A stretch of DNA of 64,000 nt from Anthoceros angustus (GCA_010909165.1 MU008161.1:2108001-2172000), one strand, 5' to 3'; positions 6,392 through 19,762 are shown, counted from the first letter of the stretch. Program-made: numbers and translations. Notes: generated by a model from the sequence alone, not told the origin.

Positions 6392-7294
6392 CTTGACCAC
6401 ATCGGTACAACCGCAGCCACAACCGATGTGGTCATCCATGACATGCGAAATAGTTCCCGTGTATGCGGCGGACTATTCTTCATCCATAACCCTAAAAATA
6501 TCTGGATGCTGCGTGACCAGTTCGGTATTCCATAATAGAAAAATATACACATATCCTTTTTATATGATGAAGATAAAAAATGTATTGCACATCTTTTTTC
6601 TACTCGGTAACATCTTATGTTTATGTGTGGGCTTTCAAGTGTTCCTTTTCATGTCTCATGACGTCTGTCTTACCTCTGAGATGGAGCACTTGGTATGCTT
6701 GCAGGGTGGGTTTCTTGGGCGATGGGGTATGTTGATGAGGCAGAGGACTTCGTCCATGGCCTTAAGCCTGACCTGGTGTTGTGAACGTCTCGGTTAGGGG
6801 CCATGAAGGAACCCAGGGGCCACACATGGATGGAGTCTGCAACGAGGTGCATACCTTTGCGGTGGAGGACGCGGGTCATAGTGAAAGAAGGGAGATTATT
6901 TGGAGCTGGAAAAACCTGTGGGGTCTGTAAGACAACGGACACATAGCTGACCAAGCTTTTTAGCCCTGGAGCATCCATGGTGTAACCAGCCAAAAATAGC
7001 ACGAACACTTGTCTCTTCAGGATTGTTTCCTGCTGACAGAAGTGTGACACAACAAAGAAGGGCAGGTGCATTGGTTCCATCCGTACGGGAGGCCTGACAC
7101 AAAGAGGGGCAGGCTGCTGATGGAAGCAGCCGGGGGATCCCGTGGTCGAAAAGCCTTGTGCAGAATTCCATGGCCGGCAGCCATTCTTGGGGCTCCTGCA
7201 TTAGTGGGCTCCCTCTTCCTTCACACAAGCAGCTTGGGTACTCTTTGCACTGCTGTTCAGCTACCCTTCCCGTGTTTCACAGACGGGAGCAGCA

Positions 7295-9015
7295 ATGACG
7301 GATCCTTATACAGTGGTCGAGCTTGTGCTGTATCCTGTGAAGTCATGTCGTGGTATTTCGGTCCCAAAAGCTTGCGTCTCCTCTCGGGGTAGGCAGTGGC
7401 TGAATTAGTCATGATTCCTGGTTGCTGATGTTCTTTGCCATAACCTCTGAATGCTCCCAAACAATGCAGGCTTCCTGTACGACAGGGACTGGATGGTGGT
7501 GACTGCAGACAAGGGACGCTTGATAACACAACTCAGAGTTCCTAAGATGGCGCTTGTGCAAACTTCTCTTCCTCTTGGTCTGTTCGGAGGACAACCGGTG
7601 CCCAGTGCTGCTGTTTTATGTAAGCTCTCTGCCAAGCTCCTGTGGGCAAAGCTGGTTCTCCCAAAAACCTCACTGCTTCCATGGTCTGGCAGGCATGGAT
7701 GCACCTGGAATGCCGACGCTCAAGGTTCCCATTACGAGACCAGTCCCAAGCTCTGCTCTGATGATAGGGCAGAGAGGAGCCATTGTGGAAGTAGTGGTAT
7801 GGGCTTGGTCTGGCCTCGGCATAGATGAAGGTCCGGAGGCAAGCAGGTGGTGGACTGAGTACTTGGGCATGCCTGCTCGTCTGGTCCGAGTTCATGAAGG
7901 TGAGGTTAAGTCCTATCCTCCTTATCCAGGTTGTTCTAGCTTAACTCCTCGAACGAGAACGGGGACCTGGACGTGCCATTTTATACAGATCTGATGGACC
8001 GCCAAGTGTCAAATGCTCCTGATGGATTTGTGACCGGCTTCAGCAACACAGGACAGTTCCTGCTCCAATCTGAGGTAGTGCTTTCAACCACATCCGATGG
8101 TCATGTCTTGTCTTGCCAATTTGATTACTTCATAGAATCAGTATTGTGCAGGCCTCACTGGAAGATCTGAACCAGCGTTTGGAGCATCCGCTCCACATGA
8201 ACCGCTTCAGACCAAAGTCTGCCCACTTTTGCTTCTTTGAAGATGAAGCAACTATACGTATATGCATTTCCCGCATGCTGTCCAGAAATCCTTCTAGCTT
8301 TCCTAACTAACAGTCTTGGGTTCTTGCGGCAGTTTGGTGATCCGAGGACCCAGGGCATATGAAGAGGACGAGTGGCGTACCTTCGCAACCGTGCGTGGTG
8401 GTCAGAAGCTCCGGTTCTCTTTTGTCAAGCGCTGTTCTCGGTGCAGGGTACGTATTTTCACGTCTTCCAAATGCGAGCTTCACTGCAGGCTCTGTAAAGA
8501 CAGGAACCCACCAAGCTATTCCTTGTCCCACCTTGCAGGTTCCAAACATCAACCAGGAGACTGCCGAAGGTCCTGCTTTCGAGCCTGGGCAGGTCTGAAC
8601 TTGCCTGCAAGTCTGACATGCTCAGGATACTACAACTTTAATCTTTGCACTTTCTTCAAAAAAAAGAATGCTATCACAGCATGCTTCCATCTGACATCAA
8701 CCTTACCTCGGTTGCGCAGACGCTGACCACTTACCGATCTGGAAAGTTGCTGGGCATGGATGCCAGGGACGCAAGGCAGGTGCGTATCCTTTTCGCTCAC
8801 AGATCCACTGTCCTTGCCTCCTCTCCTACTCCTCGCAGCAACATGGAACCTTACTTCCTTACTCAGCAACTCGTCTCCTTTCCTGCCAGATTTTCTTCGC
8901 GACCTACTTCGTTTGCGACCGCACCACGAGTCTGAAGAAGAGCCCGCTGAATGAACTCCCTTCCGTGGCAGTCGGAGATGCTCTTGAAATCCTCACCTGG
9001 GCACCCTCCTCCTGA
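7295..9015 (+). CDS. MOSC-domain protein (mARC / Moco sulfurase C-terminal-like), multi-exon
   Basis: Spliced translation: MTDPYTVVELVLYPVKSCRGISVP, GFLYDRDWMVV..GRLITQ..PKMALV, MNRFRP, EEDEW, VKRCSRC..PNINQET, TLTTYRS, IFFATYFV..VAVGDALEIL*. Stop TGA at 9013-9015. An upstream exon near 7120-7240 is possible. Confidence 0.88.
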
Positions 9016-9601
9016 TCCATTTTGGCATCGGCATTCGGTTTGTGGCCAGCAGAGCTCCCTTTTTTGAAGGGAATGCCAGCAGAAGCCATGTTTGAGGATG
9101 CATTCAAGGACCCATGTTTGAGGTCACTCTCGTGAATGCTGCTTGAGTGACAGAGATGACTCATACCATGTGGTATGAGTCTTCTCTGTCACCAAGGATG
9201 CACATGGTATCAATCTTCTGTCTCCAAGGATGGAAAATAAAGAGCTTTATCAAAGGAGAAGAGATGTGGGTAGCCCATCTACCATCAAAGGACAAGACAA
9301 GAGACCCCGATGATCAATAACGGGCTCACCAACCTGCCTAGAGTAACAGAGATGACTCACACCATATCGCTAGATGACTGAAAAGGGAGGCATGCCCCAT
9401 GCTCCTGCCCCCATGCCCCGTTTGAGTGTTTTTTGTCCAACAGCGTTTCATAGTTCAACCAGGTAAGCGCTGGAACTCTTGAGCTAAGCAACGAGGCTCA
9501 TTAACTCGTTGTCAGGTTAAGTTCGAGATTCTGATTGAGCACGCGTGGGACTTGGTTGCAATGGTCTTGCGGCCATGTTCCGGTAGCGGTGCGAGCTCGA
9601 C

Positions 9602-10659
9602 ATGGAGCCAGTGGTCGCGCCGTCCGAGAGCTCTGCAGATGCTGCCTGTATTTCGGAAGCAACGCGGGATCGAGGATCCGGTTTACCGGTGCTCAAGAAC
9701 ATACAACCTCCAACCATCAGCCCCGACACGGTGAGTTGAATTGCTTACAAGATTAGGGTTTGCAGGAACTGATTTGCTGATCATGTCCTGATACCACAAT
9801 GTGGTGTGTGCGTGTGTGTGTGTGTGTTGCAACAGCTCAAGGCTGTGATGGCCAGGGAGCCAGGATATGACAGACTGCAGCTCAAAATACTGGACTGCAG
9901 GCACAGCTTTGAGTTCGAAGGCGGGCACATCCTAGTCAGCCTCTTCACCATGACTGTCTGTTCTGGAATTAGGACTGTGAGTAGGGCCGCCGGAGATGCC
10001 TGAATGTTCGGCCCGTGGAGGCCCTGTGTGGCTGACAGAGCGCATCTCTCTGTCAGGGGGCACTCAACCTGAACCAGCCAACGTCTCTGGACGAATTCTA
10101 TACGGACCATGAAAGTGAAGGGAAGAACATGGTGCTTCTGTTTCACTGCGAGTTTTCTTCCTCAAGAGCACCGCAGATGTAAGTCTTTCTCAGGGAAATT
10201 TCTCCATGCTCTTCTGTGATGTTCTTTTTTTTTCACAAAGAGCTAGCCAGGGCAGGTACGCACACATGCGAAACATGGACAGGCACCGGCACATGGAAGT
10301 GTACCCCGAGCTGGCCTTTCCCCACATGTTCCTGCTGCATGGAGGATACAACTCCTTCTATTATTTGCACCCGGTAAGCATCTTGTCTTCATGTAGTGCT
10401 TTACCGGAATGCTCATAATTAAGAGGCCTTCATTTCACTGCATGGTTTTCTGCAGGAGCTGTGTGAGCCCAGGCAATATGTGCGGATGCTGGAACCGGAG
10501 TACAGTGAACAGCTGAGGATCGCCAAGGAGAGTCTGAGAAGAAGCTGGAACAAAGTCAGATCTCGTGAAGGAGCTCTGGCAAGGAAAAGTATATGTGACA
10601 CAGGCTGTGACAGGATGAGCAGTGCCAAGCCCAAAGCTGTCAGGTCACTTGACGTCTGA
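9602..10659 (+). CDS. CDC25: Cdc25-type (M-phase inducer) dual-specificity phosphatase, rhodanese fold; exons 9602-9730, 9836-9934, 10057-10178, 10256-10373, 10456-10659 (223 aa)
   Basis: All four introns are GT-AG and the frame is intact. Motifs: ISPDTL, ILDCRHSFEFEGGHILGALNL, LLFHCEFSSSRAP (CX5R, 10144-10167), MRNMDR..YPELAFPHMFLLHGGYNSF, LCEPRQYVRM. Additional 5' exons cannot be excluded. Confidence 0.9.
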
Positions 10660-11050: not shown

Positions 11051-12901
11051 TTATGCAGAACACCCAACTTTCCTGCACACTTCTCCCTCACACACAAACC
11101 CTTCTTTCCCACCATGTCCAGCACCTTCTTCCTCCCCGGCACCATCTGCACCGGGCACTGCTGCGGGCTTGCTAATCCCTGCACCACAATGGACGTGAAC
11201 ATCGTAGCGGCATTCGTCACAGCGGTAAGCCCAGCGCTGTCCTCCCTGCTCACAAATGTCACACCCGAAAGACCCACCACCGTATGGAACCCTCATAAGC
11301 ACCAGGGGATGCTCGTGGCCGTCGACCGTAACCTCCTTCGCGTGCTTCTGCACCTCCAGATCCTCCTCCTGCTGCAACTCCTCCTCCCGCTCCTTGGTGA
11401 AGGGATAAGCTTTGGCTCCGGAAGCTTCCACCAACGTGGTGCAGTCGAGCGTGACGACAGTCTTCCCATCCGGAGCAAGAATCACCAACGTCGGCACGCC
11501 TTCCACATCAAACCTCGATTCCAGATCCTCCGCATTCTTCCTATCAGCATACGGCAGCGCCAGCCACGGCATCTCCGCGTAGTACCCCCGGAAGCTCTCC
11601 TCGTCCCCGTCACTGGACACGAACACCACCTCAAACGGCTTCCCCTGCTCCTTCAGCTCCTTGTAGACCTTCACCAACTTGGGAGTGAAATCCTGGCATG
11701 GCGGGCACCAGTGCGCCGAGAAGTACAGGCCAACCGTCTTCCCGATCAAGGAGGCAACCTTGGTCTCCTCCCCGGCATGGTTCACCACGAAGTCCCGCTC
11801 CTTCGTCACCAGCGCCTTCTCCAAGCTCCTCCCTGCCAGCTTGATCTGCTCCAGCTCCGCGATCCTCTCCGGTGTGAACGGGAATCCCTCGGCTCCATAC
11901 CTCATCACCAGGCCCACGGCGTTACTGCGCGCCGTCTTGCCGTGCTCATCCAGCAGCACCAGGTTAGGGATACCGCAGACGTCGAAGAAGTTGTTCAGAC
12001 GGGACTTGGTGCGCTGATCCGAGAAAGGAACCGCCAGCCATGGCATTGTGTCGAGGTATTCCTTGAAGGCCTCTTCATGCTCATCTCCCGACACAAATAC
12101 CACCTCCAGATCCCGCTTCTCCTCCTTCAGCTTCTTGTAAACCTCCGCCAGTGCCGGCGTGAACCTCCGGCACGGCGGACACCAGTGCGCGGAGAAGTAG
12201 ATCGCCACCGGCTTCCCGTCCAGATCCGAAATCTTCACCTTGCTTCCATCAGCTCGGACAAGAAAATCCCTCCCTTCTTCCGGCAAGAACAAGGACTGAA
12301 GCGTCTGATTCGCCTTCATCTTCGCCATCTCCTCCTCCAGCTCCTGCACCCGCTCGTCCGAGAAGGGGAAGGCATCGGCTCCCCATTTCTCCACGATCGG
12401 CCACGCCGGCTGGCTGCTGAACCTGCCGTCGGCTCCCACGAACGAGAGGCTGAAGATCCCCAGCCGGAACAGCTCCTCAACCTTGCCGCGGACGGCGCCG
12501 CTTCCGAGCGGCACTGCCAGCCATCCGGCGGGCATCTTCTGCAGCACATCCTTGAAGGACTCCTCGTCCGGTCTCCGATCTACCTGACTGCCTTCTCCGT
12601 ACTCCTCCAGGGACTGGATCACGCTCTCGTTGCGATCCACAGTGGAGTACAGGATCGCCAGCGGTTTGCCCTGCTCGGCCAGCGATGCGTACAGATCCAC
12701 GAGCAAAGACACTGCCTGGATCAGGCGAGAAGGCAGCCAGTGCGGCCCGACCACAAATCCAACCACCTTCCCTTTGATTTCATCGTACTTGAACTCCTTT
12801 CCAGCTCCATCCACCAGCACATCCCCGTCCCCAGGAAATAGCAAGCTCTGCAAATCCACCACAGTTACCTTTGCATCATCCTTCCCCTGCTCCAGCTCCA
12901 T
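11051..12901 (-). CDS. NRX1: Nucleoredoxin (three thioredoxin-like modules plus C-terminal Cys/His C1-like domain), intronless
   Basis: FSAHWCPPC occurs twice, followed by HEHPL..CDICE..YRCDECRYDVHVHC and terminal EGFVCEGEVCRK. ATG of MELEQ is at 12901 inside the 669 aa ORF. Confidence 0.92.
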   Translation of the reverse strand: MELEQGKDDAKVTVVDLQSLLFPGDGDVLVDGAGKEFKYDEIKGKVVGFVVGPHWLPSRLIQAVSLLVDLYASLAEQGKPLAILYSTVDRNESVIQSLEEYGEGSQVDRRPDEESFKDVLQKMPAGWLAVPLGSGAVRGKVEELFRLGIFSLSFVGADGRFSSQPAWPIVEKWGADAFPFSDERVQELEEEMAKMKANQTLQSLFLPEEGRDFLVRADGSKVKISDLDGKPVAIYFSAHWCPPCRRFTPALAEVYKKLKEEKRDLEVVFVSGDEHEEAFKEYLDTMPWLAVPFSDQRTKSRLNNFFDVCGIPNLVLLDEHGKTARSNAVGLVMRYGAEGFPFTPERIAELEQIKLAGRSLEKALVTKERDFVVNHAGEETKVASLIGKTVGLYFSAHWCPPCQDFTPKLVKVYKELKEQGKPFEVVFVSSDGDEESFRGYYAEMPWLALPYADRKNAEDLESRFDVEGVPTLVILAPDGKTVVTLDCTTLVEASGAKAYPFTKEREEELQQEEDLEVQKHAKEVTVDGHEHPLVLMRVPYGGGSFGCDICEQGGQRWAYRCDECRYDVHVHCGAGISKPAAVPGADGAGEEEGAGHGGKEGFVCEGEVCRKVGCSA

Positions 12902-13145
12902 CTCCACCAAGCCCCAGCAATTCACACAAATGCAACCCAAATTCGGATCTGGAAGCCAATATAGCGCACTGCAATCAGTCAAGGAGTCAAGGAAGTCACC
13001 GAGGCAATGGAAGAAGAAGTCTATTAAGGATAAGAAACAATAGAATTTACTGGAGGGCAAAACTTAATCACGTTTCCCCATTGTGAAACTGATCCGCCTA
13101 CGTCTACGGGGTGCTTAACTTTGTGGTTCTAATTGTCATCCTCAT

Positions 13146-16552: not shown

Positions 16553-19390
16553 CTACATAATCAATCTCAGTCTCCTACCTTCAATCTCTGGGTGCTTTCT
16601 GTCCCGAACCACAAAGGTGTGCACCATCCCGTCCCCATCAGTCCACGAGCTCTGGCCTGGCTCCTTCCATGCCCCGGTTTTTTTCCTCCTCACCTGTATC
16701 TCTTGTGCCCTCTCCCACATCAGGGCACTGGAATATATGTTGGCCATCAGCACATATGCCGAAGCATCCTTTTCGTCTAGCTTCACAGCTTCGTCAAAAG
16801 CATGGCGTCCTACCTCGACGTCCCTCCACTTTTGAGAGGCACCCAACAGAGTGAGCCAAACTGAAATATGAGGCTGTACAGGGATCGTCCTCACCACTGC
16901 AAGTGCCTTGTGAAGTTGGCCAGCACGACTCAGGAGATCCACCATGCATGCATAGTGCTCCATGGTTGGAGTGATGCCATAGTGTGTGCTCATAGCCTCA
17001 AAGTGATCTTGCCCCTTGTTTACTAGACCTGCATGACTGCACACTGTTAGTACATTAAGAAGGGTGACGCTGTCCGGTTGTATGCCATCCTCTTGCATCA
17101 TGTGAACCAAGTATAGGACCATGTCACTGTCTCCTTGACGGGCGTATCCTGAAATCAGCGCATTCCAGCTGACAAGATCTCTCTCAGGCAGTGAGTAAAA
17201 CACTTGCTGTGCATCAACCATGCTCCCAGATTTTGCATACATGTTTATCAAGCTGTTGCCTACATTCTCCTCAGCTAGAAGCCCTTGCTCTTTAATCTGT
17301 CCGTGAAGTTGCCTTCCCATATGCAGAGCTGCCACACTTGCACATGCCTGCAGGAGGGAAACAAATGTCGCAGAATGAGCAGCGATGCCTTCTTCTTCCA
17401 TAGCTCTGTAGAGATCAAAGGCTTCCTGACTCATGCCCTGCTGGGAATATTGAGCTATCAGAGCAGTCCATGTTACCACATTCTTTTCAGGAAGGCTGTC
17501 AAACACAGTCTGAGCATCCTGTAAACTGCCACACTTTGCATACATGTTGACCAAACTGCAGCCTACAACCACGTCAACCTGAATCCCTTGTTCTCCAATC
17601 TGTGCATGAAGCCGCTTCCCCATCTCCAAAGCTGGAGTACCGACAGCTGCACATGCTTGCAGGAGACATACAAATGTTACAGAATCAGGTGCAGCGATAC
17701 CTTCTTCTTGCATAGAAATGTACAGATGAAGGGCTTCCTCACCCATACCCTGCTGGGCATACCCTGCTATCAAGGCAGTCCATGTCACAACATTTCTTTT
17801 TCTAAGTCCATCAAACACGCTCCGAGCATCCTTTAAGCTCCTGCACTTTGCGTACATGTTTATAAGATTGTTGCCTACAGTCACCTCAGCTTGAAGTCCA
17901 CGTTCCTCAATCTCTCGGTGAAGCTCCTTTCCCTTCTCCAATGCTGACGTACCGACACTTGCACATGCCTGCAAGAGACACACAAATGTCACGGAATCGG
18001 GTGCAGCAATGCCTTCTAGCTGCATGATACTGTAAAGTTGAAGTGCTTTGTCACCCATACCCTGCTGGCAATATCCTGCTATCAAAGCGGTCCATGTCAC
18101 CACGGGCTTTTGGGGAAGCTCATCAAAAACACTCTGAGCATCCTTTAGACTGCCACACTTTGCATACATGTTCACGAGGCTACACCCAACAACCACATCA
18201 GCCTGAAGTCCTTGTTCCCTAATCTGTACGTGAAGTTGCTTCCCTTTCTTCAAACCTTCGGTACCTACACTTGCGCAAGCCTGCAGAAGGCACACAAATG
18301 TCACAGAATTGGCTGCAGCAATGCCTTCTTCTTGCATAGCACCGTATAAACGAAAGGCCTCTTGGTCCATGCCCTGCTGTGAGTATCCTGCAATCAGAGC
18401 GGTCCAAGTCACCACATCTTTCCGACATAGTCCGTCAAACACTCTCTGAGCATCTTTCAAGCTGCCGCACTTCGCATACATATCCACCAGGCCATTGCAA
18501 ACATAAGACCCAACCTCAACCCCACTAGCCAACAAATCAGCATGCACCTGCTGCCCACTCTTCAAGTCTGCCGCCCTTGCACAAGCCTGGAGAGCTGCCA
18601 CAAAAACATGCCCATCTGGCTTGTCACTCGACCCTTGCATCTGATGGTACAGATGTATAGCCAGCTTAGCTTCTCCATGTTTCACACATGCAGAAATTAT
18701 AGCAGACCACGTGAACCGATCTGGGTTGGTAACCGCCGAGAAGACAACCATGGCTTCTTCTAACCTGCCATGAGAAACATACATTCTCAGGAGATGATTG
18801 CACAAGAACGTGTCCGACTCATACCCAAACTCCACCATCAGAGCATGAAGACGCCGACCCAGACTCAGATCCTTCTTACCCACACATTTCCTCAGCAGAC
18901 TATACAACACTGGTTTCACACCATCACAGCCTGTCTGTACCAGAACTCCCAGAGCCTCAACGGCCTCATCCAGCTGCCCCTGCTCACATAATTTGCTTAC
19001 GGTGTCAGCCCTAACCCTCGTTTCCAGTCCTGCTGAACTAGGGGCAAGCCGACCCATCTGCATGACCGGGGCAGCCTGCTGAGCCCGGTTGAAATGCTTC
19101 TCAAGCGAATACAAGCCTTTGTCATGCTGCCTGCTATCCCAACCAGGTGATTGGTCCAGAAAATACTGTCGCCCTAAGAGCTCGCCATCGTTAGCCAGAC
19201 ATTTCGCTGTCCGACCAAAGGTCATGGAGCTCATGTTGCATCTCGCGGCTCTCTCGTTTGCAAACGTTTCGGAAATTACTTCCGGGTGGGCGGAAGCTGT
19301 TCCTACAACACCACCAATCCGTTGAGTCCGCCAAACCTGTTCCCCCAACAGGTCCTGTCGCCCTGTTAGCCCAAGGCGCCAAACCGCCAT
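16553..19390 (-). CDS. PLS-class pentatricopeptide repeat protein with E/E+ domain and no DYW; intronless
   Basis: Repeating P-L-S triplets (VVTWTALIAGY..DSVTFVCLLQACA..VGCSLVNMYAKCGSL), E domain (TMEHYACMVDLLSRAG) and PG box KEPGQSSW; stops soon after HPE. First ATG at 19390 (the ORF track starts at a GTG). Confidence 0.95.
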   Translation of the reverse strand: MAVWRLGLTGRQDLLGEQVWRTQRIGGVVGTASAHPEVISETFANERAARCNMSSMTFGRTAKCLANDGELLGRQYFLDQSPGWDSRQHDKGLYSLEKHFNRAQQAAPVMQMGRLAPSSAGLETRVRADTVSKLCEQGQLDEAVEALGVLVQTGCDGVKPVLYSLLRKCVGKKDLSLGRRLHALMVEFGYESDTFLCNHLLRMYVSHGRLEEAMVVFSAVTNPDRFTWSAIISACVKHGEAKLAIHLYHQMQGSSDKPDGHVFVAALQACARAADLKSGQQVHADLLASGVEVGSYVCNGLVDMYAKCGSLKDAQRVFDGLCRKDVVTWTALIAGYSQQGMDQEAFRLYGAMQEEGIAAANSVTFVCLLQACASVGTEGLKKGKQLHVQIREQGLQADVVVGCSLVNMYAKCGSLKDAQSVFDELPQKPVVTWTALIAGYCQQGMGDKALQLYSIMQLEGIAAPDSVTFVCLLQACASVGTSALEKGKELHREIEERGLQAEVTVGNNLINMYAKCRSLKDARSVFDGLRKRNVVTWTALIAGYAQQGMGEEALHLYISMQEEGIAAPDSVTFVCLLQACAAVGTPALEMGKRLHAQIGEQGIQVDVVVGCSLVNMYAKCGSLQDAQTVFDSLPEKNVVTWTALIAQYSQQGMSQEAFDLYRAMEEEGIAAHSATFVSLLQACASVAALHMGRQLHGQIKEQGLLAEENVGNSLINMYAKSGSMVDAQQVFYSLPERDLVSWNALISGYARQGDSDMVLYLVHMMQEDGIQPDSVTLLNVLTVCSHAGLVNKGQDHFEAMSTHYGITPTMEHYACMVDLLSRAGQLHKALAVVRTIPVQPHISVWLTLLGASQKWRDVEVGRHAFDEAVKLDEKDASAYVLMANIYSSALMWERAQEIQVRRKKTGAWKEPGQSSWTDGDGMVHTFVVRDRKHPEIEGRRLRLIM

Positions 19391-19762
19391 GAGCCGGGTA
19401 GGCACACGCTGAACCAGCAGTGCATGCGATCAAGCAAGCATCGGGCCTATGCATCTGGCTGAAGGATGCACCTCGTGCAAAAGCTCATGAAATGTCGATG
19501 TTCGACCCATTCTTCCTAGACTCATGTGAACCCTCTGCCCAAGGCCCAAGGAGGGTAGAAGAATAGGTGCAAAATTACGGACATTCCGATTTTGAGAAAG
19601 GGTGTTTCGTTTAAAGAAAGGAATAAGAATAAGAACGAGGAGCCCGGCTCCTAAGCACGAATTCATGGGGCGATAGGTCTGTAATGGGCTTCCCGATTCC
19701 AAAGCCCAGGCTGGAGACCACATGAACGTCCTTCATGACCATGTTTTCCTCCTTCATGCAGA

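Follow-up and report, generated by a model that had tools for sequence, protein, structure and literature searches.

The CDC25, or M-phase inducer, phosphatases include human CDC25A/B/C, Drosophila String and yeast Cdc25/Mih1. To our knowledge, the textbook view for two decades has been that land plants are without a true CDC25, and a canonical member of the green lineage was reportedly described from Ostreococcus tauri by Khadaroo et al. in 2004. In a Nature Plants paper of 2025 (PMC12626892), the absence of a true CDC25 from land plants is still stated. According to a more recent article (Plant Cell 2026;38:koag103; PMC13237563), streptophytes have two CDC25 clades, one of which is homologous to the metazoan and yeast CDC25 proteins, occurs in bryophytes and charophytes, contains Marchantia MpCDC25;1 and was “lost in vascular plants”; the second is the ACR2, or MpCDC25;2, type. 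Here we describe a CDC25 gene in a 64,000-nucleotide (nt) stretch of the genome assembly of the hornwort Anthoceros angustus (GCA_010909165.1, MU008161.1:2108001-2172000), referred to as the window. We regard it as virtually certain that the gene is expressed and truly a canonical CDC25, and with good confidence we interpret it as an orthologue of the canonical eukaryotic CDC25 phosphatase that is intact, transcribed and of vertical descent and that belongs to the streptophyte clade of MpCDC25;1.

The family assignment was derived from comparisons at the level of single exons and of a profile. Exons 2, 3 and 4, searched singly against all PDB sequences, matched CDC25A/B/C exclusively, up to an E value of 10, and their matches followed one another collinearly on chain 1c25_A (residues 45-61, 63-104, and 112-139, respectively). 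The best PDB match of exon 3 was CDC25A (1c25; E 3.7e-4 over 40 amino acids (aa)), and exon 4 matched CDC25B (E 2e-4); neither Leishmania ACR2 (2j6p) nor Arabidopsis CDC25 (1t3k) was matched in these searches up to the same E value. Pfam, applied to single exons, which are too short for it, yielded a 16-bit Rhodanese match on exon 2 as the sole result. A profile (A1) composed of the window exon pieces and streptophyte relatives, ranked against the PDB, reached 1.3e-46 and 162 bits for CDC25B and similar values for CDC25A and CDC25C (150-162 bits), as against 3e-8 and 36 bits for Leishmania ACR2, 5e-4 for yeast YGR203W (3fs5/3f4a), and E 0.05 and 16 bits for Arabidopsis CDC25; rhodanese-fold enzymes other than CDC25A/B/C, the rhodanese domains of MKPs included, reached 36 bits at most. 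A small rhodanese of the ACR2/Arabidopsis type, that is, an arsenate reductase or sulfurtransferase-like protein merely resembling CDC25, might be suspected from the length of 223 aa and the missing N-terminal domain, as in Arath;CDC25, and from Pfam showing only “Rhodanese”. However, the restriction of the exon-level matches to CDC25A/B/C, the profile ranking, and three introns which the gene has in common with an animal CDC25 (see below) exclude an ACR2 identity, and the window protein clusters with Marchantia MpCDC25_1, which is placed in the canonical clade in the published two-clade phylogeny (PMC13237563); we therefore give this explanation hardly any credence.

When exon 4 was searched exhaustively with phmmer against 1.84 billion representatives, 95 matches were returned. 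The best match, a protein of Riccia sorocarpa, aligned with the full 223-aa protein at E 1.6e-64. Named relatives were Marchantia polymorpha “protein MpCDC25_1”, proteins of Riccia, Calypogeia, Sphagnum and Mesotaenium, the “M-phase inducer phosphatase” of Klebsormidium nitens, and Ginkgo biloba Gb_10573, and these streptophyte relatives were followed by M-phase inducer phosphatases of animals, chytrids and amoebozoans, numbering in the hundreds. Identities to the window protein are 50-51% for Sphagnum and liverworts, 44% for Ginkgo, 39-42% for algae, and about 40% for animal CDC25s. Short matches to exon 4 alone (P0002, P0005, P0006 and similar) are metagenome fragments and uninformative. A word-based search of a 5.8-billion-protein collection retrieved neither the window protein nor a near-identical one; since it also missed the known members P0004 and P0032, this result is no proof that the gene is unannotated.

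The preliminary description of the locus had proposed an intact five-exon gene with GT-AG introns and an open frame, and had named the failure to find a transcript as a result that would count against it. Both the structure and its splicing are borne out by a 3092-nt RNA contig from run X1, which shows 0 differences from the window and spans all four introns; this run contains 55% of the words sampled from the locus. The contig comprises the pieces 9499-9729, 9835-9934 and 10057-10178, continues from 10256 to 10372 and then from 10455 onwards, placing the joints on the plus strand at 9729/30-9835/6, 9934-10057, 10178-10256 and 10372/3-10455/6. The acceptor of intron 3 is thus at 10255, and the protein across this joint reads ..HCEFSSSRAPQMYAHMRNMDRH.., with RAPQ-M-YAHMRN around the split codon. 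Candidate models in which exon 2 extends to the stronger-looking donor at 9977, or in which intron 3 ends at an in-frame acceptor at 10240, were ruled out by the same contig. RNA depth is zero at 9278-9411, upstream of the start of the contig, so that there is no hidden upstream exon and the gene is separate from its upstream neighbour; because an in-frame TAG lies within the transcribed leader, the start codon is assigned to the ATG at 9602 (Table 1). Two upstream ATGs in the leader may, speculatively, allow translational control of the upstream-open-reading-frame type. Two related species (runs X12 and X13) show the three downstream joints in their RNA contigs as well, at 85-95% identity. 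The motifs quoted in the preliminary description are likewise all present at the positions it gave.

The phylogenetic position was inferred with IQ-TREE (LG+C20) from 73 CDC25-family proteins and 157 columns. The window protein falls into a streptophyte clade (starred in the tree; 96/92, n=11) inside the CDC25 family, among animal, chytrid, amoebozoan and chlorophyte CDC25s. Besides the window protein, the clade holds Ginkgo Gb_10573, a pair formed by the Mesotaenium protein and P0007, and a moss plus liverwort group (96/75) which includes MpCDC25_1. The window protein lies outside the latter group, as expected for a hornwort gene, but the branching at the base of the clade is not resolved. 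Klebsormidium is not resolved into the streptophyte clade, and animals, chytrids and chlorophytes form other groups. P0007 (Logan ERR12684110/ERR12684111), a complete canonical CDC25 transcript of 260 aa, pairs with Mesotaenium at 99/89 and could be of zygnematophyte origin. In P0003, a Sphagnum tenellum protein from NCBI, the exon 2 block DCR..GGHI is missing; it is present in Sphagnum P0100 and P0300, and its omission is probably a mis-annotation.

The Ginkgo protein (P0032; EukProt EP01018_Ginkgo_biloba_P014365, Gb_10573) is a 190-aa model within the starred canonical clade. It shares 40-50% identity with each of the sampled relatives and is therefore no obvious contaminant. Its position sits awkwardly with the loss in vascular plants stated in PMC13237563. 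For the present, we consider it a tentative and rather doubtful proposal that the history of canonical CDC25 was not one of simple loss in vascular plants; if it holds, it would imply an old duplication, several late independent losses, or both, and a WEE1-CDC25 switch still operating in part of the land plants, a seed plant among them.

For a comparison of intron positions, the annotated proteins were fitted exactly to the DNA of the genomic loci of five streptophyte or animal relatives and one chlorophyte. The exon lengths of the window gene (129/99/122/118/204 nt) recur in the three internal exons of Marchantia (327/99/122/118/240 nt), Calypogeia (417/99/122/118/228 nt) and Sphagnum (126/99/122/118/240 nt), and those of Klebsormidium are similar (147/103/121/118/207 nt). 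In these five genes the four introns occupy identical alignment columns. The window gene, Marchantia, Calypogeia and Sphagnum have them in phases 0,0,2,0; in Klebsormidium, intron 2 is in phase 1, beside the small length difference of the adjoining exons (103/121 versus 99/122 nt). The CDC25 gene of the oyster Crassostrea has the last three introns of the window gene at the same positions and in the same phases (phase 0 after GGHI-K, phase 2 in the R-x-P-x turn, and phase 0 before ELCEP), including the 118-nt exon, whereas the introns of the chlorophyte Myrmecia CDC25 differ from those of the window gene. Intron positions common to streptophytes and the oyster indicate vertical inheritance; the pattern is as predicted for descent from an ancient eukaryotic CDC25 and argues against contamination or a transfer via complementary DNA.

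The absence of the family from angiosperms, together with the failure of the word-based search to retrieve the window protein from protein databases, could also be read as the mark of a contaminant or of a gene recently acquired by horizontal transfer, with an animal, a fungus or an alga as donor. Yet a single contig holds the CDC25 gene between a MOSC gene, a plant nucleoredoxin gene and a PPR gene, its introns are short (77-122 nt) and of the GT-AG type, and they are placed as in liverworts, a moss, and Klebsormidium. The transcription of spliced orthologues in two related species, the position of the protein in the streptophyte clade rather than with animals or fungi, and the intron positions rule such an origin out for practical purposes, and we assign it next to no probability.

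The 223-aa product is predicted to be essentially a bare rhodanese-fold catalytic domain with a basic C-terminal helix. Its HC(X5)R loop has the CDC25 form H-C-E-F-S-S-x-R, present here as HCEFSSSR at aa 106-113, and HCEFSSSRAP aligns with HCEFSSERGP of CDC25A. The remaining CDC25 blocks, DCR..E.EGGHI, DR...YP.L.[YF]P..[YF].L.GGY and CEP..Y..M, are collinear. The ISP motif at the end of exon 1 aligns with the start of CDC25 catalytic-domain constructs, and the exon 5 tail corresponds in the alignments to the tail LKRSW..RSK of streptophyte relatives as well as to R506/S513/K514/R520 of CDC25A. The catalytic core is preceded by about 55 aa only, in agreement with the compact domain almost devoid of an N-terminal region envisaged earlier, Pfam gave no match on exon 1, and the metazoan N-terminal regulatory domain PF06617 was not detected. 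A long regulatory domain of this kind, with 14-3-3 and degron sites, is characteristic of metazoan CDC25s rather than of the entire family. Since the canonical streptophyte members are all short (190-360 aa), the short form is not special to the window gene.

Contact residues of CDC25A have been named in a cryo-electron microscopy study of CDK2-cyclin A-CDC25A (PMC11316097; CDK, cyclin-dependent kinase). They were mapped onto the window protein by a profile alignment to chain 8roz_C together with alignment A1, the correspondences being taken by hand. The catalytic Cys431 is kept as Cys107. Ser435 and Arg437, which contact the CDK G-loop, are kept as S111 and R113, and the residues contacting the GDSEID/alpha-G region, Arg446, Arg450 and Tyr455, are kept as R122, R126 and Y133. 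In the C-terminal helix, Arg506, Ser513 and Arg520 correspond to R185, S192 and R199, and Lys514 is replaced by Arg (R193), as in CDC25B.

We lean towards the view that the window CDC25 serves in vivo as a phosphatase of CDK Thr14/Tyr15. In the proposed mechanism, the Cys107 thiolate of the HC(X5)R loop (HCEFSSSR) would strip the inhibitory phosphates, placed at Thr14 and Tyr15 by WEE1-type kinases, from the mitotic CDK-cyclin complex. Docking of the substrate would involve Arg122, Arg126 and Tyr133 against the GDSEID/alpha-G region of the CDK, and the basic C-terminal helix would dock at the CDK-cyclin interface; the expected outcome is the promotion of mitotic entry (G2/M), for which the G2/M-specific expression of MpCDC25;1 (PMC13237563) gives indirect support. 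With an N-terminal regulatory region that is nearly absent, control is more likely to be transcriptional, and perhaps translational via the upstream ATGs, than to follow the animal type of multisite phosphorylation and 14-3-3 binding.

Several points weigh against our interpretation. We know of no biochemical or genetic test of the land-plant members of the canonical clade, and according to Dissmeyer et al. (2009), Arabidopsis is said to cycle normally with no need for dephosphorylation of CDKA;1 at Thr14/Tyr15. In Chlamydomonas, the phosphatase BSL1 does the job of CDC25 on CDKB (PMC12626892). These two cases imply that a CDC25 role in the green lineage is not guaranteed. Three of the named CDC25A contacts are altered in the window protein, namely Glu447 in the GDSEID/alpha-G contact (Asn), and Arg502 and Lys504 in the C-terminal helix (Lys and Ser, respectively). 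The residue comparison, moreover, is one of alignments rather than of a predicted structure of the window protein, and the 73-protein tree contains no ACR2-type outgroup, for which the PDB profile ranking substitutes.

The altered contacts, the role of BSL1 in Chlamydomonas, and the lack of an N-terminal regulatory region would also suit a protein that is canonical by descent but has been repurposed, acting on another phosphoprotein or, like the ACR2-type rhodaneses, on arsenate while the CDK switch is run by, e.g., BSL-type phosphatases; that vascular plants mostly lost the gene and yet kept mitotic control (PMC13237563) points the same way. On the other hand, >450 million years of streptophyte evolution have left most of the CDK-docking residues unchanged, and likewise the basic C-terminal helix, and the active-site loop (EFSS) is that of CDC25 rather than of ACR2. 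Single-cell RNA data in PMC13237563 show G2/M-specific expression for the Marchantia orthologue MpCDC25;1, whereas the Arabidopsis-type paralogue is expressed ubiquitously. We consider repurposing improbable, though deserving of some weight. Far less probable still is a decaying relic which is transcribed but no longer active as an enzyme. Departures from the consensus of the other streptophytes (GGHIL for GGHIK, RAPQM for RAPKL, GGYNSF for GGYKAF) might be taken as signs of decay; but the gene has an open frame with undamaged splice sites, the catalytic Cys, the Arg and the docking residues are kept, the terminal branch of the window protein (0.57) is close to the tree median (0.42), and the orthologues of related species retain the same splicing in RNA.

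Table 1. Positions of the CDC25 gene, its transcript and coding features, and of neighbouring genes, counted from the first letter of the window
Feature	Position	Strand	Residues and remarks	Evidence
MOSC-domain (MOSC_N) gene	7270-9155	+	multi-exon; upstream neighbour	
5' untranslated region (UTR)	9499..9601	+	at least 103 nt	X1 RNA contig begins 9499
Upstream ATG	9561	+	other frame, extends past main ATG	ATG/stop scan
Upstream ATG	9575	+	main frame, MFR-stop	ATG/stop scan
TAG in 5' UTR	9584	+	in frame	ATG/stop scan
CDC25 gene	9602-10659	+	five exons, all introns GT-AG, open ATG-to-TGA frame	
Coding sequence	9602-9730 + 9836-9934 + 10057-10178 + 10256-10373 + 10456-10659	+	672 nt, 223 aa	
Start ATG	9602	+		
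Exon 1	9602..9730	+	aa 1-43; Ser/Thr-rich short N-terminus ending ..PPTISPDT	RNA
Intron 1	9731..9835	+	105 nt, phase 0, GT..AG	RNA
(GT)n microsatellite	9798-9832		within intron 1	
Exon 2	9836..9934	+	aa 44-76; motif ILDCRHSFEFEGGHI	RNA joint 9934-10057; PDB phmmer; weak Rhodanese Pfam match
Motif DCRHSFEFEGGHI	9893-9931		aa 63-75	
Intron 2	9935..10056	+	122 nt, phase 0	RNA
Exon 3	10057..10178	+	aa 77-117 (last codon split)	RNA; PDB
Active-site loop HCEFSSSR	10144-10167	+	in exon 3	
HCEFSSSRAP	10144-10173		aa 106-115	
Catalytic Cys107 codon	10147-10149	+	in exon 3	
Intron 3	10179..10255	+	77 nt, phase 2	RNA
Exon 4	10256..10373	+	aa 117-156; MRNMDRHRHMEVYPELAFPHMFLLHGGY; equivalents of CDC25A Arg446, Arg450, Tyr455	RNA joint 10178-10256; PDB
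Motif MRNMDRHRHMEVYPEL..FLLHGGY			aa 121-148	
Intron 4	10374..10455	+	82 nt, phase 0	RNA
Exon 5	10456..10659	+	aa 157-223 + TGA; ELCEPRQYVRM, basic C-terminal helix/tail	RNA
CEPRQYVRM	10462-10488		aa 159-167	
Basic C-terminal helix/tail LRRSWNKVRSREGALAR	10534-10584	+	in exon 5	
Stop TGA	10657-10659	+		
Plant nucleoredoxin gene	11051-13060	-	intron-less; Thioredoxin_8 repeats and C1 domain; downstream	
PLS-class PPR gene	16553-19405	-	950 aa, intron-less; ends in E motif, without DYW domain	

Among the neighbours, the best named relative of the nucleoredoxin is from the hornwort Nothoceros aenigmaticus (58% identity); identities are at most 49% for liverworts, lycophytes and ferns and 33-44% for seed plants. 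The 3092-nt CDC25 RNA contig extends past 11000 towards this convergent gene, and the 3' ends of the two genes may abut or overlap. Two sequence variants of the MOSC gene occur at different depths in the RNA runs, a hint that the genome contains a close paralogue at another place. In Marchantia, Sphagnum and Klebsormidium, the CDC25 orthologues have neighbours other than those in the window.

Beyond the structure of the gene, the preliminary description had started from the premise that angiosperms have only ACR2-like proteins and that Ostreococcus possesses a true CDC25, which agrees with the literature, and its view of the flanking genes as plant genes is confirmed for the nucleoredoxin and the PLS-class PPR gene. 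The canonical rather than ACR2/Arabidopsis-type nature which it proposed is upheld by the PDB ranking, the tree, and the introns common with animal CDC25. Of the phylogeny across both families which it called for, the placement in the CDC25 streptophyte clade was obtained from a tree; for the ACR2 family, the comparison was made via the PDB profile ranking only. The novelty it attached to the gene does not stand, because orthologues are already documented in bryophytes, both in PMC13237563 and by NCBI records named “MpCDC25_1” (Marchantia) and “M-phase inducer phosphatase” (Klebsormidium nitens), and the preliminary description had itself named such documentation as a ground for withdrawing the claim.

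The 2026 Marchantia paper (PMC13237563), whose species set took in Anthoceros agrestis, overturned the older view for bryophytes via phylogeny and expression alone. With the canonical clade published there, the novelty of the window gene is low, and it is best regarded as a well-supported new member of the clade. It is nonetheless an independent, RNA-verified member from the third bryophyte lineage, and two arguments go beyond the accessible text of that paper, namely intron positions shared from Klebsormidium to a hornwort, three of them also with animal CDC25, and the conservation of docking residues. The RNA-verified exon structure and the placement of Ginkgo Gb_10573 are further additions. 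The compactness of the 223-aa protein makes it a convenient construct for biochemistry. The gene opens no new question.

The closest described systems are Marchantia MpCDC25;1 (NCBI MpCDC25_1, P0097) and the orthologous proteins of liverworts and Sphagnum, which belong to the same starred clade and share 45-51% identity with the window protein. Like Marchantia, Calypogeia and Sphagnum, the window gene has its four introns at the same positions and in the same phases, enclosing identical exons of 99, 122 and 118 nt, and like these orthologues the protein has the HCEFSS.RAP loop, the MRN.DR..H...YP helix and the LKRSW..RS[KR] tail. The part before the first intron is 43 aa long in the window protein, as compared to 109 aa in Marchantia and 139 aa in Calypogeia. 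In contrast to MpCDC25;1, the window protein lies outside the moss plus liverwort subclade, and the loci share no synteny. The “M-phase inducer phosphatase” of Klebsormidium nitens (P0101; 231 aa) is 42% identical and has four introns in the same places, whereas the CDC25s of the chlorophytes Myrmecia and Trebouxia are placed apart in the tree and differ in their introns.

Arabidopsis CDC25/ACR2 (1t3k), yeast Acr2/YGR203W and Leishmania ACR2 (2j6p) are likewise small Cys enzymes made up of one rhodanese-fold domain with a CX5R loop, but they are distant (16-36 bits versus 150-162 bits for CDC25A/B/C), and PMC13237563 assigns the ACR2 type to the second streptophyte clade. Unlike human, Drosophila and yeast CDC25s, the window protein is without the N-terminal regulatory region of 300-400 aa. 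Its spacing from DR to YP is two residues longer than in human CDC25A/B, and the oyster protein also has both of these residues. With human CDC25A/B/C (1c25, 1qb0, 3op3, 8roz), Drosophila String and yeast Cdc25/Mih1, it has in common the rhodanese-fold domain and the motifs HCEFSS.R, DCR..E.EGGHI and CEP..Y..M, and with CDC25A/B/C, judging from the alignments, the putative CDK-docking triad of two Arg and one Tyr and the predicted basic C-terminal helix.

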